Positions 6,199 through 58,568 of a stretch of 64,000 nucleotides of DNA are shown here, piece after piece. Positions within the stretch are counted from its first letter, which is position 1; each line of letters opens with the position of its first letter. Position numbers and translations under genes: made by a program. The stretch comes from Podarcis gaigeae (taxonomy: Eukaryota), in NCBI GenBank assembly GCA_964106915.2, contig OZ066914.1; one strand, 5' to 3'. The notes under the pieces were generated by a model that saw only the letters and a list, made by a program, of their open reading frames with translations, was not told the origin of the DNA and searched no databases.

Positions 6199-7544
6199 CT
6201 TGGGGATTCAAAAAGAGGGGCACATCAGTCTGCAGAAGTGTAGATATTTTAGTTCCCCTGCACTGCCCTTCAATAATATCTTCTATTTCGGAAACATTTT
6301 ATAAGCAACCATTTCAGAAGCCTGCTGCAATCCTCCACAGAGAAATTTTGTTTAGGAAAATTGGCACCCCCACCAAACAACACATGAAAGTAACCAAGCA
6401 CTTCGATTTAGTTAAATCTAAATACTTCTATTCGGTTGAAAAAGTTGCCTCCTTGAGCAAAACTGAACATGTGTGGTCTAGGAATCAGCCAAGTGCTACC
6501 CTTGGTGCAAATCACACTTCAGCCTTCAACTCACTGGGTGGGCCTTGAAAGGTTGCCATCTCATCTTCAATCCTCAGCCATGCAAAAGAAACAACCTTGA
6601 ATTGTGGCTTAGTCCCATCCACAATAGGCATTCAAATCAGGATCATACCACTTTAAACAACCATGCCTTCTCCCAAAGACTCCTGTAAAGGGTGCTGAGA
6701 GTTGCTAGGAGAAACCGATTATCCTCACAGCGCTACAATTTCCAGGGTCCCCTGGGAAGAGGGATTGCCTGTTAAACCAACTCTGGAAACTGTAGCTCTG
6801 TGAGTGGAACAGGGGTCACCTCTCTGCTGACAACGACAACCAATTCACAATTCAAAAAACCTATATGAAACAACATGTGCCAAACAATAATATGTTGAAA
6901 CTCCTATCCTAGGAATTGAGGTAGGTATTTCTGTCCCTGGTGCAAACATGGCAAATGCTAGCAGGGAAGGTTGATGCTTGCAACATAGCAACAGCATGTC
7001 TGGACACAGTGCTCTGCCCCCCTCCCAAAAAAAAATCTGATGAACTTTTTCAGTCATATTTTTTTTTTGGGGGGGGGGGAGAAAAAGGCTATATTCTTCC
7101 TTTCAAAAGAATACCAATCCCTGTTCCCACCAGCACAGACCCTGAAAAGGTGCTATCTTGTGATGTCGCATCCTTCCACACAGACATGGAATCAGAAATG
7201 GTCCTGAAGCACACTAGGAGTGGTTGTTTGCCACAGTGGTGCAAAGTCTTTAAAAGGCAGCCAGGGTTGGAGTATCCAGCACTGTCAAATCAAAGTGTAA
7301 ATCTTCCGCCCCTAAAGATTTTTAACCATTTCTCCAGCTCACCTCCAAAAACTGCAGCAAATATTTCTCCACTTTTACAGCCAGAGAGAATTAAGCTCTG
7401 AAAACAAGGAAATGCCATTGGCTGAGCTCTATTACACATGGATTAATTCCCCTCACCTTTCAAAGGATTTAGCCATTATACTTATGATTTCCTTTCAGGA
7501 AGGGGACACAGCTGGTGATATTCAACATGTAACTTGATAAATCA

Positions 7545-8330
7545 AACCATGCCAGATTGAAGAAGATCCCTAAGCGGTGAACCTGATCTTTGAGAGAGGA
7601 TGCAATGCTATCCAAAAGCAGATGACTTCCACAGCCCTGGTGGGTTAAACCACCAACCAACAGTGCCCCTCTCTTATCTGGATTCAGTATACTAAGCCCC
7701 ATCCATCTCACTATGGATAATTCAGAGTCAGACATCCTCATCTAACCTTTAACCACATTAGATGAAAAAGGCAGAGTGAGACTGCAGAAGCATACCCATG
7801 CTACCTAAACCCCAACTTCCAGAAAACCTCTCCTAGCAGTTTAATGTTGATGTTAAATAGTATGGTGTGCAGAACAGAACTTTGCAGAGCACCATAACAA
7901 ATGCAATGGATTTATGAAGAAGAAAACTCCATCCCACTTTCAACCCCTCAAACAGAAATGGAAGTCCTTGAGCACAGTATCTCCCACGTTCAACCGGACA
8001 GGCCACCCAAAAAGTATACCATGGTCCATGAGATAGGCAATGAGAAGTCCAGATCAATTAGCAAGAGCTAGACTGCACCCTCTCTCAACAAATGTCATCA
8101 ACCAAGGCAGTTTCAGTTCGCAAGCCATGCCAAATAATGACTGAAATGGGTCTAGGTAATCTCTGTCATCCAGGAATAATTACATGCTTGAGCACCTTAA
8201 CCTGAAGAGGTTGCAGCCAGACAGATCAATTAGTGTCAAAGGAGGCTTCCCCCTTCACCACTTCCACTTCGCTACTGCCCCCTTCAAGGCAACTAGCAGC
8301 ACCATACCTTATCTCCCAAAGAGATGCATT
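7545..8330 (-). mobile_element. Decayed L2-clade LINE ORF2 (reverse transcriptase) remnant
   Basis: Frameshifted minus-strand peptides DHGILF..VGDTVL, GALQSSVLHTILFNINIKLLGEV..HGYA and WM..LNPDK..LLVG..LKDQVHRLGI resemble L2 RT motifs (GVPQGSVLSP.LFNIY, LNPDKTE, LKDQVRSLGV). Confidence 0.78.
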
Positions 8331-19805: not shown

Positions 19806-20013
19806 TAATGTGATCAATGGATCCTCCACAGAACTTTCCATAGAATTTCTTTGCTCCTAGGCTTCGAAGATCATGAATAGTAAAAGGCCAGAGGTGAAGC
19901 ACATTGTTTCTTGAAAAAGTGTCTCGTTTCTCCACAACAACGACTTTGGCTCCTAGAAAGGCAAGTTCTATGGCAGTCCGCAAACCACAGGGTCCACCTC
20001 CAACAATCAAACA
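19806..20013 (-). CDS. MICAL2: MICAL2 coding exon 2 ([17 protein letters not shown]...FCGGSIDHI), FAD-binding GxGxxG motif, 208 nt
   Basis: cctgcag|TGT acceptor, A|gtaagt donor; Rossmann GGGPCG motif; phase 0 to 1. Confidence 0.97.
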
Positions 20014-49924: not shown

Positions 49925-50906
49925 TACATGAACAACTCTGGATAGCAGGCTTGTCTTGGGAAAACAAGAATAAAGTTGTTTTCCAAGCAAAGAATAAGAC
50001 ATTTGTTTGGTGATTCCCATCATGGCCCTATAAATTGATTTTCCTTTTTTTAAGCAGGAACCTGAATACAGTGCTACATGAAACACACAAAATAGCAGAC
50101 AGCAACCTATTGACTGCTTTACAGCATCTTCGGTTTTATTTTAAATGTGCATATAAATTACTCTATTACAAAGAGGTGCTAGAAAAATATGCTGTCAAAC
50201 TGAGGGCAGGACCCATGTGAGTTATGCTGGCTCATATCGAGATACACCTTGATCCTAGCTTTGAAATGATAATGCACTCTGAGTAAACAGATGAAATAGC
50301 TAAGCAATTCCTGTTGTTCAAGTTAAGGAGGTGGTTTCACATTAACAATACAAATTCAGACACCAAAGACATTGGAGATCAAGCTGAAATTATTAACATG
50401 GTAAGAGCACATGGACTGGAATTAAGCCTTCACCACATCACATGCCAACATTTAAGAATTAAGGTTGGGGGTGGGGGATAGGCAGTATGGTAGGATTATT
50501 TCATAGTTCTTATATTTATACTTTTCCAAATGTCAAGAAACTACAGTATGAAGAAGAATGGTGAGATTACCTGTATTTTTGGAAGTTTTCCAATCTCTTT
50601 TTGGGGAATACACCCTGTCCTCCTTTAAGTGTAATCCAAAACTCTGCTGTCCTTTCACAACCTGAATAGGATACACTGGTCTTGCTGTTAGGGATCACTC
50701 CCTTTTACTAGAAATACACATGTGGCCTCTAATGTGGTCAGTCTTAACCCAAGTTTCAGGAACCAGCAGACCCATCTGACCAACAAAGCAATTGCATCCA
50801 GACGCAGGAATTAACAGGCAGGTTATTTTCACCAGTTTCTTTAATATGGAAAATAAACAGTTTAAGAGTGGAAAGAGAGATTTGGGTATTCTAACCTTAT
50901 ATTCTT

Positions 50907-51021
50907 ACCAGCATGAGTTTGACCAAACTGCGGGAGGCAGTGGAGGACAGAGGTGCCTGGCGTTCTCTGGTCCATGGGGTCACGAAGAGTCGGACACGAC
51001 TAAACGACTAAACAACAACAA
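50907..51021 (+). mobile_element. RTE-BovB LINE 3' fragment
   Basis: ggtccatggggtcacgaagagtcggacacgact with (CAA)n tail; flanking AACCTTATAT duplication. Confidence 0.88.
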
Positions 51022-51596
51022 AACCTTATATCCAAGTTCTGCATGTAATTCCCAGTTGATAGCTGCTTAGAGACTTTATAACAGAGTTAGCCTGTGGAAC
51101 ATGTCACTGCTTGGAGAGTAGAATGGACAGAGAAGCTGCCCATTCCTGCTTCAGCATGTTGTGGTCAGACACGAACACACTAAGGACATCTGCTTTGTTC
51201 TTTGAACGTACCAAGACTACTAACCCTAACGTTCCAATAGCTCAGGCAGGTTTTTCTATTGGCTACCCTTGCCAGAACATCCTCAAAGCCCATTCTAGCA
51301 GTCAACGGGATCGTCTCATTCTACAAGACAGAGATGTTTTGGCACTGGCCTGGAACCACCATTTCTCAGCACACTTTCTTATTCAGGCCCACTCTCCTTT
51401 ACACTAGGAAGGGACTTTATCAGATCCATCCAATTGCTGTTAAGGCTACTGCAGTTACTAATCAAGCAAATACACTCCCTTCCCTATTATTGCATGTAAT
51501 AGACCCTAGTTCAGTGTTTCCCAACCGGTGTTCCCTGGCACACTAGTGTGCCGCGAGAAGTTGCCGGGTGTGCCGTGGGAGGGAGGCGGGCGAGTC

Positions 51597-52579
51597 GGGC
51601 TGCTTTAGCCCCGTGCGTGCTCTCCCAGCTGGAGAGGTGACGCGCGCCTATGGAGGCTCCTGCCATAGGCGCGCGTCACCTCTCGAGCTGGGAGAGCACG
51701 CACGGGGCTAAAGCAGCCCCCCGCGACCCTCTCCCCGCTGGAGAGGTGACGCGCGCCTATGGCAGGAGCCTCCATAGGCGCGCGTCACCTCTCGAGCTGG
51801 GAGAGCACGCACGGGGCTAAAGCAGCCCCCCGCGACCCTCTCCCCGCTGGAGAGGTGACGCGCGCCTATGACAGGAGCCTCCATAGGCGCGCGTCACCTC
51901 TCCAGCTGGGAGAGCACGCACGGGGCTAAAGCAGCCCCCCGCGACCCTCTCCTCGCTGGAGAGGTGACGCGCGCCTATGGCAGGAGCCTCCATAGGCGCG
52001 CGTCACCTCTCCAGCTGGGAGAGCACGCACGGGGCTAAAGCAGCCCCCCGCGACCCTCTCCCCGCTGGAGAGGTGACGCGCGCCTATGGCAGGAGCCTCC
52101 ATAGGCGCGCGTCACCTCTCCAGCTGGGAGAGCACGCACGGGGCTAAAGCAGCCCCCCGCGACCCTCTCCCCGCTGGAGAGGTGACGCGCGCCTATGGCA
52201 GGAGCCTCCATAGGCGCGCGTCACCTCTCCAGCTGGGAGAGCACGCACGGGGCTAAAGCAGCCCCCCGCGACCCTCTCCCCGCTGGAGAGGTGACGCGCG
52301 CCTATGGCAGGAGCCTCCATAGGCGCGCGTCACCTCTCCAGCTGGGAGAGCACGCACGGGGCTAAAGCAGCCCCCCGCGACCCTCTCCCCGCTGGAGAGG
52401 TGACGCGCGCCTATGGCAGGAGCCTCCATAGGCGCGCGTCACCTCTCCAGCTGGGAGAGCACGAACGGGGCTAAAGCAGCCCCCCGCGACCCTCTCCCCG
52501 CTGGAGAGGTGACGCGCGCCTATGGCAGGAGCCTCCATAGGCGCGCGTCACCTCTCCAGCTGGGAGAGCACGCACGGGG
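51597..52579. repeat. Tandem array of nine 109-bp GC-rich palindromic units inside the hAT element
   Basis: Hairpin start gctggagaggtgacgcgcgcc recurs at 51628, 51737, 51846, 51955, 52064, 52173, 52282, 52391, 52500 (period 109); only about 5 variant positions. Confidence 0.97.
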
Positions 52580-53162
52580 ACCGTCTCCCGGCTGGAGACG
52601 CGGGGCTGGGGCGGGGGAAGCCCGAGCTTCCCCCTCCCCCAGAACGGGACCCAGAGCTCTGGGAGCTTGCGGGGCTGGGGGAGGAGGAAGCCCTCCGCCA
52701 GCCTCCAAACCATGTCGGGAGACAGCGGGTGGGCGCGCTACGCCTCTCCCGCTGTCTCCCGAGTTTGCGGGGCTGGCGACGGGGAGGAGCAGGCTTCTCC
52801 CCCCGCCAGCCTTCTAACCAAGTCGGGGGACAGCGGGATGGCGGCGTTCCTTCGGAGGACGCCCCGTGCTCCGCGCTGGTGTTGGCCAGCCTTGCGCACC
52901 GGGCGGCGCAGAGCACGGGGCGCCCTTCGGAGGACGCCCCGTGCTCCGTGCTCGTGTTGGCAAGCCTTGCGCACCCGGAGGGGGGCGCGTGGGGCGCCCT
53001 GAAACAGAGGGTTCCCCATGCTGCGGACTGTAGCCTGCCGCCCGATGTGCGGGGCGCCCTGAAGCAGAGCGCCCCTCGCGCCAGGCAGACATGGGCCAGC
53101 CCCACAAGCTCGGGGGACAGCAGGGAGGCGCAGCACCGCCATCCTACTGTTCCCCGACCTGG

Positions 53163-53220
53163 TTTTGGGGGGGGGGAAATAAAGGAAAAAATTTTTTCCT
53201 TTATTTCCCCCCCCCCAAAA
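53163..53220. repeat. Perfect 58-bp palindrome with no loop
   Basis: TTTT-G10-AAATAAAGG-A6 | T6-CCTTTATTT-C10-AAAA. Confidence 0.95.
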
Positions 53221-54436
53221 AAAAAAGTAGGTGCGTCATATGGGACGGAGCGTCCTAAAAATACGGTACTTACTATTTCATAATAAAGTAATTATAAAAT
53301 ACCGGTACTTTCTTTGTGTTTATTTGATGCCTATTAAAGAGAGTTACTTTATATATAGTCAATATAGGCACAGAGTTAATTTTTTAAACATTTTCTAATG
53401 GTGGTGTGCCTCGAGATTTTTTTCATGAAACAAGTGTGCCTTTGCCCAAAAAAGGTTGGGAAACACTGCCCTAGTTAAAGAAATCTTCAAGGCACAGAAA
53501 TATATTTTTAATTACTGGTATGCTTGTGGCCTCAACAACTGTGCATAACAAATAAAACATAGGGTGGCATGTTTACCTATTTAAGGTAATTATTTAAGTA
53601 ATGCTGACAAGTACCTTTCACTTGCTTGGAATGGAACATACAGAAGCCCACAATTGTGCCCACATGGTGTAAGGGTTTTCCTGCTTCAAGGATCTAAGAA
53701 AACAGCCACTTTTCCCATATATAGAAATCGCTTGCACTTGCATCTTATTTCTACTACAACCATTATCCATTTTGTAGCATGAATACCTTGAAGTCTTAAG
53801 CATTCCAGAAATCAGCCATGAAAGGCAACAGTAGGGTGGCAAATCTTGCTACAAAATCCATGTTCCACTGGACTCGATGTCCATAGGATGAAGAGGTGCC
53901 CAATTCTATTTCAAAATTACAGTATGAAGAAGTAGCTCATCCTCGCTCCACACATACAACTCCATCACGTGCCCCACTGTAAGAAACCTGAGCTACAAAC
54001 TCATCTCCTATCCTGCCCCTTTCTATCTATCCTAAAACCTAGACCTTGTGTAGCCGCTCCACCCATACAATTTTTAAACTAGATAATAGCAAAATAAACC
54101 TCCTCCCTTCTTCCAGAGCACCCACCCTTAATATTACAGAAGTTTAACATTAATTGAACCTCACTTACTTTGGGTATGCACTTTCAGTAGAGAGGATTCA
54201 CACCTTCAGTGCCTTTTGAACCACCCATTAATAAAGAACACTCTTAGATGGACAGTCAGATACTTAAAATGCTGTTTCAAAGCACACCCAATGAAATATG
54301 AATGGTGCTTAAGCCTCTGTAGGACACAGAGGCTGGGTGGATACAGGAAAATAGCACATTCAGGTTTCTGAACATCCTACACAGGATGGAAGACTGTAGG
54401 CACTTACTCAAGCGCTCCAAAAATAATGTTTAGCAT

Positions 54437-54914
54437 TGTTATTTATGACTTTGTGGGTGCCAGACCTTTCAAATCCCTGGATCTAACAAGTGCAAGAAGC
54501 CAGGCTAGCTTCCTGAACTCCGGGGTCCAGCAAGTGTTGAAATACAAGCCAGGTTAGCTTCCTGCTGAGGTAATCACCAGGGGTGACGGGCCATTAAGAG
54601 AACAAAGGAAAGGGGGCTTTGTGTCAGATGACAAATGGATGAGCTTCAATTCAAGGATAGAGGGCGGAAAGCCTGAGCTATGTGAGTTGAGTTATGTGAG
54701 CCAGAAGCTGGGAGAAAAGCTGCTAGCTGAAGAGGCCTCAGAGCAATGGTTGATTTCTATCTGAATCCAAGGCTGTAGCTATGGGAAAGGCAAGACACTT
54801 TTGGGGTGTTAATGTTTCTGCCGTGCCTCATTCCAAAAGGAAACACAAACCCTGGGTAAACTCCTGGAACCCCTGGAATCTTGCACTGCTCAGAGATAGG
54901 GGTGGCAAGCAACA
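54437..54914. mobile_element. Possible solo LTR
   Basis: TGTT...AACA termini with flanks GCAT/GTAT (one mismatch); ~480 bp and more GC-rich than flanks; family not identified. Confidence 0.35.
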
Positions 54915-57014: not shown

Positions 57015-58214
57015 ATATCTCTGCAGAATCAGGCTATTTCAACCTCTCGTTTCCAAGTTGACTTCAGTCCCATAATTCAGCTATTTCTCAGGCCAACTAT
57101 AAAGTTTCCTTCATGTTCTTTAGTACTCTGAAACTTAGTCATATATGTTCCTGAAGCTGCACAAAATTAGCATTATTTGTGAATAAAATCATTTAAGAGA
57201 AAGGAGCATATTCACAGGTATGTACAAAAACTAGCATCAGGGCTGGCCTGAGCTACTTCATTCAAGGCAGTTCCTACGCAGATAAAACAACAACGGCGCA
57301 GAAGTGTTAAGTGAACCCATTTTCACCATTATTTGTGAAAAATATGACAAAACTGACATGATAAAGACTTTTTTTGCATTTCCCCCTACACAGAGATTTA
57401 TTATTCAAGGCTGGATTGGTGCAATGCAGTCCCTTGAGCAGAAACTGCTGTTAAATATGCTGATAAATATGGCATATTCTGCTGCTAATCCTGCACACAA
57501 CGGAAAGGAACAACATCAAGTGACCTTGTCTTGTCATTGATATTTGTATCAGCATTCTGCCTCAGTCGGCAGAAGTAGGTTTTGTCTAGCCCTAACCGGT
57601 ACATTTTAACAGTGCTCTTTGTTAACATACCATTATTGAAAGAATGCAGCATGATCAGAAAATAAGGTAAGGCAAGCCCTGCTGGTTCAGACCCAAAGGC
57701 CCGCCTAGTCCAAAATCTCATCCTTACAGTGGTCAATCAAATGCCTATGGGAAGCCCACAAGCAGAACCCGAGTGCCATAGAGCTCTCACCACTTGAAAT
57801 CCCAGCAGATGGTACTCAGAATCATATGGTTCTGGTTGGGGGGGGGAGCCCTGGTTGTGGGAGGGAGGGCTCTCACTTGAGCTCTGCTTGGTCATGTTGC
57901 TGCTACTTACTGGGTGGTAGAGGAAGAAGGGTGAGATAGCAGCATGACTGGTACAGCACACAAATGCACCAGCAGAATAAATCCAGTACTCCACTGATCT
58001 CACTGCTGACTCTGCCCCCCCCCCCCCCACTTCCTGGCAAACAGGGTGTCAGGTGAGCGCTGCTGCTGCTGCTACCTCCCCTAAAATTATCTGCTTCTGT
58101 ATGAAGTAGTGGTTTATTTTGCCTGTTCTGAATCTTCCAACATTCAGCATCCAACAATCTATTCTGCCTATCCACTTTCTCCATACATGAACAATCCTAC
58201 ACACACACACCTTA

Positions 58215-58568
58215 AAGGTAAAGGTAAAGGTACCCCTGCCCGTACGGGCCAGTCTTGACAGACTCTGGGGTTGTGCGCCCATCTCACTTAAGAGGCCAGG
58301 GGCCAGCGCTGTCCGGAGACACTTCCGGGTCATGTGGCCAGCGTGACATCGCTGCTCTGGCGAGCCAGAGCCGCACACGGAAACGCCGTTTACCTTCCCG
58401 CTGGTAAGCGGTCCCTATTTATCTACTTGCACCCGGAGGTGCTTTCGAACTGCTAGGTTGGCAGGCGCTGGGACCGAGCAGCGGGAGCGCACCCCGCCGC
58501 AGGGATTCGAACCGCCGACCTGTCGATCGGCAAGTCCTAGGCGCTGAGGCTTTAACCCACAGCGCCAC
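58215..58568 (-). mobile_element. Sauria SINE, near full length, young
   Basis: (AAAGGT)n tail on + strand, ttcgaactgctaggttggcagg core, tRNA-like B box ggattcgaacc, CpGs retained; 11-bp TSD CACACACCTTA (58204-58214 / 58566-58576). Confidence 0.92.

Follow-up and report, generated by a model that had tools for sequence, protein, structure and literature searches.

Within a 64-kb stretch of DNA from the lizard Podarcis gaigeae (contig OZ066914.1; this whole stretch is referred to here as the window), positions 51512–53468 are occupied by a 1957-bp non-coding element. This element is best explained, with a probability of roughly 80%, as a non-autonomous DNA transposon of the Charlie-like hAT group, recently inserted and polymorphic, which carries a palindromic minisatellite as passive cargo. 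The core of this reading, a mobile hAT bearing palindromic tandem repeats, had been put forward by an earlier examination of the letters of the window (the original prediction) and is borne out by ends that start with CAGTG, an 8-bp duplication of the target with a central T-A, empty sites at the same position in other samples and the occurrence of the repeat unit elsewhere. From left to right the element and its borders comprise the following features.

51504–51511, no strand: left target-site duplication, CCCTAGTT, present as a single copy in the empty-site contigs of X3 and X4 (see below)
51512–51526, plus strand: left terminal inverted repeat (TIR), 15 nt, perfect, from end-motif search and end alignment
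51527–51580, plus strand: left subterminal region, containing two GTGTGCC motifs and, at a distance of 26 nt from the end, GGCACACT
51581–51696, minus strand: inverted array unit with both loops flipped, from self-comparison (92–93% complementary over 115–116 nt)
51620–52579, plus strand: 109-bp tandem array, 8.8 copies, each unit made up of two hairpins whose stems measure 34 bp and 6 bp
52580–53162, no strand: GC-rich (0.64–0.75) non-coding interior with palindromes and direct repeats spaced 60, 75, and 108 bp
53163–53220, no strand: perfect 58-bp palindrome with 29-nt arms and no spacer, 100% complementary, at the boundary between GC-rich and AT-rich DNA
53221–53453, plus strand: right subterminal region, AT-rich, containing GTGTGCC at 53404 and 53434
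53454–53468, minus strand: right TIR, 15 nt, perfect, from end-motif search and end alignment
53469–53476, no strand: right target-site duplication, CCCTAGTT, present as a single copy in the empty-site contigs

The recent movement of the element was examined in contigs of sequencing runs, nine of which contained half or more of the words sampled from positions 50500–54500. Contigs of four runs were compared: X1, the best-matching run and possibly that of the source animal; X3, another sample under the same species label; X4, a second species; and X7, a further species whose flanks are not alignable at 90% likeness. Two X1 contigs cross the left and right junctions of the filled site without differences (record 2, 50999–51566; record 8, 53446–54500). 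In X3 a 1654-nt contig (record 10) joins 50999–51503 directly to 53469–54500 with no extra letters, and thus lacks exactly the element and one CCCTAGTT. The same clean empty site, again with one CCCTAGTT, occurs in X4 (record 16). Since a clean site with a single copy of the target represents the state before insertion, the insertion is derived and young as well as polymorphic within the species label, and it has recently been mobile by cut-and-paste. The depth of the X3 empty-site contig (11.1) lies within that of its flanks (10.2–11.7), which suggests that this sample does not simply carry the empty allele beside a filled one, homozygosity being beyond the proof that contig data can give. 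The original prediction had described the hAT as young and mobile and had named an empty orthologous site in related lizards as a check; such a site is present in the second species and, in addition, in a sample that bears the same species label as the filled one.

The element is also well bounded. The 15-nt end CAGTGTTTCCCAACC has exactly two matches in the 64-kb window, one on each strand at the two termini listed above, against a chance expectation of about 0.22 matches when up to two mismatches are permitted. The two inverted ends are identical over these 15 nt and diverge thereafter, although GGCACACT recurs in both subterminal regions, 26–29 nt inward of each end. Of the five occurrences of GTGTGCC in the window, four fall inside the two subterminal regions, and these motifs are candidate transposase-binding repeats. 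A search of the window for a second copy or fragment of the element returned only two insignificant short matches. The perfect inverted ends and the 8-bp duplication that had been reported around a 1957-bp element are therefore present as described, with CCCTAGTT on both flanks.

The ends and the target site also point to the superfamily. The terminal CAGTG fits the hAT motif YARNG, and hATs of Anolis are defined by 8-bp duplications together with YARNG ends (Novick et al., 2010; PMC3014272). Charlie-like families of Anolis have ends such as CAGTGGTTCCCAACCT (hAT-N3_AC) and CAGTGRTTCCCAAA, and a target consensus given as NYYTARRN, NYYYRRRN or NTCTAGAN (PMC3014272). The end of the present element differs from that of hAT-N3_AC at one of 15 positions and follows the form CAGTG.TTCCCAA(C/A)C of 14–16 nt, and it shares with hAT-N3_AC, hAT-HT3N, and SPIN_NA of Anolis carolinensis the 8-bp duplication with a central Y-T-A-R (PMC3014272). 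Five of the six specified positions of NYYTARRN are matched by CCCTAGTT, including T-A at positions 4–5, which as a single site constitutes weak evidence. Those Anolis families are likewise non-coding, present in hundreds to thousands of copies and hosted by a squamate, whereas the available part of that paper mentions no palindromic tandem array inside them (PMC3014272). The comparison of sequences covers the ends and the target, and the host family differs (PMC3014272). A second match is provided by the insect family hAT2_NA, whose 14-nt end in Manduca sexta, CAGTGTTTCCCAAC, equals the first 14 nt of the lizard element and which also makes 8-bp duplications with T-A preferred at target positions 4–5 (PMC3845634). 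In contrast to the 1957-bp element, hAT2_NA copies measure 236–956 bp, live in insect hosts and have been reported to undergo horizontal transfer among invertebrates (PMC3845634); identity over a 14-nt end does not by itself show common descent. On the basis of these comparisons the element is assigned to a probable Charlie-like group of non-autonomous hATs. Other superfamilies able to generate duplications of about 8 bp (P, Mutator, Merlin) come into consideration given that these ends are linked to no transposase here, but such an origin is highly improbable in view of the CAGTG (YARNG) start, the single difference in 15 bases from an Anolis hAT, the 14 nt identical to an insect hAT MITE (miniature inverted-repeat transposable element) and the central T-A of the target, as reported for both Anolis and insect hATs. 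A strict MITE is usually smaller than about 800 bp and belongs to a uniform population of many copies, and the present element is larger (1957 bp, or about 1.0–1.1 kb without the array), so that “non-autonomous hAT” is the safer label.

Related ends are not confined to lizards. In metagenome contigs the end together with GGCACACT was detected at 12 loci (L001–L012; for instance L001 at 1124–1341 and L002 at 7368–7585) which are eukaryotic-looking, with a GC content of 0.37–0.44, and come from at least one eukaryote, several of them resembling one site across samples. One of these elements is 218 bp long, with a duplication that agrees at 7 of 8 bp and a repeated subterminal GGTGCCG, and it has the subterminal motif (G/T)GTGCC in common with the lizard element. 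The metagenome matches cover only about 41 terminal nucleotides of the lizard element, with 83–86% identity, and the same combination of end and GGCACACT had no match in viral contigs. These data suggest that ends of this type occur in hosts far apart from one another; the conserved part appears to be the one that a transposase would read, the interior being probably lineage-specific.

The most conspicuous part of this interior is the tandem array. Tandem Repeats Finder returned a single array of 8.8 copies with a period of 109, free of indels and with 98% matches, which at 960 bp accounts for 49% of the element, in agreement with the earlier description of a 109-bp array filling about half of it. 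When a unit is folded as single-stranded DNA the main hairpin shows a perfect 26-bp stem, one mismatch, seven further pairs and a 9-nt loop, and the second hairpin (GGGGCT/AGCCCC) a 6-bp stem; the 26-bp stem with its extension, the 9-nt loop and the small hairpin of the original prediction are reproduced by the fold. Its energy is −54.2 kcal/mol (z = −13.7), a value equaled by none of 200 shuffles; folded as RNA, either strand gives −90 to −94 kcal/mol (z = −11 to −14). The flipped copy at 51581–51696 comprises a whole unit, and in the first big hairpin the left arm corresponds to a standard right arm in reverse complement; together with the following half-unit the flipped unit forms a palindrome with 57-nt arms at 51597–51719 (−69.7 kcal/mol, z = −15.3). 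The order is thus one unit in flipped orientation and then 8.8 direct ones. Of the direct units, numbers 5–7 (52056–52382) are mutually identical and the others carry five variants, private or shared, one of which is common to units 1 and 2. Three of the five variants fall in stems; no variant is accompanied by a compensating change, and CpG transitions are absent among the five. Neither the metagenome nor the viral collections contained an exact match to the 26-nt stem of the unit.

The length of the array might be an artefact of assembly, the real allele having fewer or more units. Identical units such as 5–7 could be miscounted by an assembler, and the available contigs collapse the array and leave its middle with patchy depth. 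However, six of the nine units (U1, U2, U3, U4, U8, and the truncated U9) have their own variants in order, which an assembly error would not invent, so that at least seven units are implied, and the X1 contigs confirm both junctions of the element without differences. An artefactual length is therefore considered quite unlikely. The number of units may, as the original prediction supposed, vary among copies and alleles; contigs built from k-mers collapse tandem repeats. One X1 contig which joins 51680 to 52584, skipping 903 positions, was considered as a sibling copy with a single unit and set aside: its 30-nt anchor is common to all units, and the joint, which could equally have arisen through the loss of 31 nt from the end of another array, is unusable as a unit count.

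Beyond this locus the element belongs to an abundant family. The depth of contigs aligned to the element is not a copy number and serves as a rough guide only; with this reservation, in X1 it reaches about 1,000–7,000 times the single-copy level at both ends and over the GC-rich interior outside the array, and tens to about 200 times that level over the bins of the array. In X3, the sample with the empty site, a 117-nt contig (record 11) identical to 52034–52150 has a depth of 318 against 11 for single-copy DNA (about 29-fold). As this segment spans a unit-to-unit junction, which is possible only in tandem, arrays must occur at other loci in X3. X4 and X7 also show depth over the array. The array-bearing form is accordingly a minority subfamily of an abundant family and is itself present in several related species, and the expectation that other copies would carry the unit holds.

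Between the array and the right end lies DNA of a different make. Segment 52580–53162 is part of the family because contig depth there is as high as at the ends. The possibility that 52580–53200 consists of decayed 109-bp units was tried and rejected: alignment is confined to the first 20 nt, and the scores of the remaining segments are close to those of shuffled controls. The 58-bp palindrome contains a G10 run, an AATAAA and an A/T center; at this hot spot of structural variation among members of the family, many sibling copies have deletions of 3–91 nt. The last 250 bp of the element are AT-rich. Open reading frames (ORFs) of up to 253 amino acids exist in the interior and the four longest had no match in Pfam, so that the description of the element as non-coding can be retained with this qualification. 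The GC-rich interior may be thought of as captured host DNA in the manner of Pack-TIR elements, for example a CpG-island promoter or a first exon, an origin to which its CpG-island-like composition would correspond. Capture is nevertheless unlikely, as no interior ORF matches Pfam and the segment, built from palindromes and from short modules in tandem, does not look like exon sequence; moreover, the depth of the interior equals that of the ends, so that any capture would be ancient and by now part of the family.

In composition the element stands out from its surroundings. GC content is 0.69–0.75 across 51600–53000 against about 0.4 outside, and the observed/expected ratio of CpG is 0.82 for the whole element (0.84 in the array, with GC of 0.70) against 0.23–0.31 in the flanks. 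With the usual thresholds for a CpG island (>200 bp, GC >0.5, observed/expected >0.6) the values are 0.71 and 0.80 over 1600 bp, and each of the seven 500-bp segments with starts between 51251 and 52751 lies above the thresholds. At nine sites this copy differs from the majority of related contigs, and six of the nine differences are losses of CpG here; no CpG has decayed within the array. The losses relative to the family majority hint at the signature of methylated DNA and speak mildly against a protected island. The term “CpG-island-like” used in the original prediction is apt for the composition of the element only.

These properties raise the question of whether the array has a function, either because its nine 34-bp stems, read out in the MICAL pre-mRNA or from promoters in the CpG-rich DNA itself, would be substrates of Drosha or Dicer and thus constitute a small-RNA cluster borne by a transposon, or because the CpG block would act as a mobile promoter, insulator or CpG island. 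The RNA folds of −90 to −94 kcal/mol on either strand, with a stem length near that of primary microRNAs, agree with the former and the island-like composition over about 1.6 kb with the latter. A scan of Rfam 15 gave 61 matches, many of them to microRNA precursor models, but all are below threshold: the best reaches 39.9 bits against a gathering threshold of 100, and scores of at most 40 bits against gathering scores of 43–105 are what any long hairpin gives, these matches being generic look-alikes of microRNA precursors. In addition, the stem variants among units are uncompensated, CpGs have been lost relative to the family majority as in methylated DNA, the insertion is absent from another individual and cannot be essential here, and none of the listed runs containing this stretch is on record as RNA. 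A functional array is thus decidedly unlikely. A scan for bacterial promoters and terminators was uninformative and is irrelevant to vertebrate DNA. Four points make passive cargo the most likely state of the array: no compensation accompanies the variants in stems, CpGs are being lost in the lineage, the insertion can be dispensed with and no known RNA family fits.

On this passive-cargo reading, a hAT transposase supplied in trans from elsewhere would cut and paste the element, presumably recognizing the 15-bp inverted ends and the subterminal GGCACACT and GTGTGCC motifs, and insertion has duplicated the 8-bp target CCCTAGTT. One palindromic module may have been amplified into the 109-bp minisatellite by slippage or unequal exchange; alternatively, the array may have grown by template switching from a sister copy during repair of the double-strand gap left after excision. 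Hairpin-forming units would promote slippage, unequal exchange and template switching alike, and strand switching in gap repair would also yield the flipped unit and the palindromes without spacer. Each new insertion would then carry about 1.6 kb of cruciform-prone, CpG-dense DNA to a new locus as passive cargo.

Several observations weigh against this interpretation or limit it. The unit count is that of the assembly alone. If X1 is the source sample of the assembly, the filled allele has no independent witness. The placement of GTGTGCC is asymmetric between the two subterminal regions, and CCCTAGTT departs from NYYTARRN at position 7. An autonomous hAT with these ends is absent from the 64-kb window, and no long ORF lies beside the metagenome loci. 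The undecayed CpGs of the array fit a young insertion but would equally fit protection from methylation. Finally, the passive character of the cargo, that is, its lack of function, is argued from absence of evidence.

Transposons that carry tandem repeats are known from other animals, including miDNA4 and Xmix/Xstir of Xenopus, the pearl elements of bivalves, and DINE-1 and Tetris of Drosophila (PMC9659126, PMC12628747, PMC4079207). Like miDNA4 (Tc1/mariner), Xmix/Xstir, and pearl/CvA, the lizard element has inverted ends and an internal satellite-like monomer or array (PMC9659126, PMC12628747), and stem-loops and microhomology have been proposed as drivers of the expansion of tandem repeats in MITEs (PMC9659126, PMC12628747). 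It differs from them in superfamily and host, in the near-perfect palindromic nature of its unit and in the presence of a flipped unit, and there is as yet no evidence of this array escaping as a free satellite. Tetris of Drosophila virilis is similarly a DNA transposon whose tandem repeats supply the building blocks of arrays; it is, however, a foldback element with long inverted ends built of repeats, whereas here the ends measure 15 bp and the array is strictly internal (PMC4079207). In squamates, satellites derived from SINEs (short interspersed nuclear elements) have been described (PMC10702118), and the literature, which was covered in part, yielded no account of palindromic minisatellites borne by hATs in lacertids. 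The general phenomenon is already known, and the element is an ordinary example of the minisatellite-carrying transposons.

The genomic surroundings of the element include a gene of the MICAL family. An ATG exon on the minus strand (32255–32070, starting MGEKDDEK) has the character of a MICAL N-terminus, and an exon at 20013–19810, also on the minus strand, contains the GGGPCG motif for binding of flavin adenine dinucleotide (FAD). Both match solved structures of MICAL3 and MICAL1 best (E = 1e-13 and 4e-37), on which grounds the gene is taken as a member of the MICAL family on the minus strand. The N-terminal exon resembles that of human MICAL2, which is the candidate paralogue, and the solved structures cannot separate MICAL2 from MICAL3. 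Relative to the ATG exon the element is 19 kb upstream, on the side away from the coding region, and is intronic only if a non-coding first exon is located further upstream. The only other 500-bp stretch of the window that passes loose CpG-island thresholds, 58001–58500 (GC 0.57, observed/expected 0.61), is a candidate promoter or non-coding first exon of the MICAL gene; with 58001–58500 as that exon, the element would be intronic. Of the proposed location in the 5′ intron of MICAL2, the MICAL-family gene and the position upstream of its ATG exon stand, and both the intron and the paralogue are candidates only.

The left flank varies as well. A 119-bp 5′-truncated SINE tail at 50903–51021 ends in a ACAACAACAAA run and is bordered by a 10-bp duplication, AACCTTATAT (span 50893–51031). 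The tail and one AACCTTATAT are missing in X4, where record 16 joins 50892 to 51022, and are present in X1 and X3; it represents a second young insertion less than 600 bp from the hAT. Its contig depth is in the millions, indicating a very abundant SINE family. In addition, X3 lacks 10 nt at 50805, and X4 has 10 nt (AAGGTGTAAA) inserted after 51181.

Among amniotes it is uncommon for DNA transposons to be still mobile. Direct evidence of very recent activity is given by a hAT insertion that one lizard has and that another individual and a sister species cleanly lack, and the element illustrates how a transposon spreads a minisatellite around a genome. A more far-reaching proposal, to which only a small chance is given, is that an active or very recent lacertid hAT lineage repeatedly builds arrays of near-perfect hairpins in its non-autonomous copies via strand-switching gap repair, and that every insertion brings a CpG-dense block to its locus and, in transcribed regions, a group of long dsRNA hairpins from which small RNAs against the entire family arise; if true, this would constitute a self-limiting, transposon-borne generator of small RNAs in an amniote. 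The phenomenon itself is known in frogs, bivalves and insects, and the value of the present element resides in being a well-documented, datable case rather than a new principle. Insertions of this kind are potential fragile sites and length-polymorphic markers and may, rarely, become new regulatory DNA or small RNAs.

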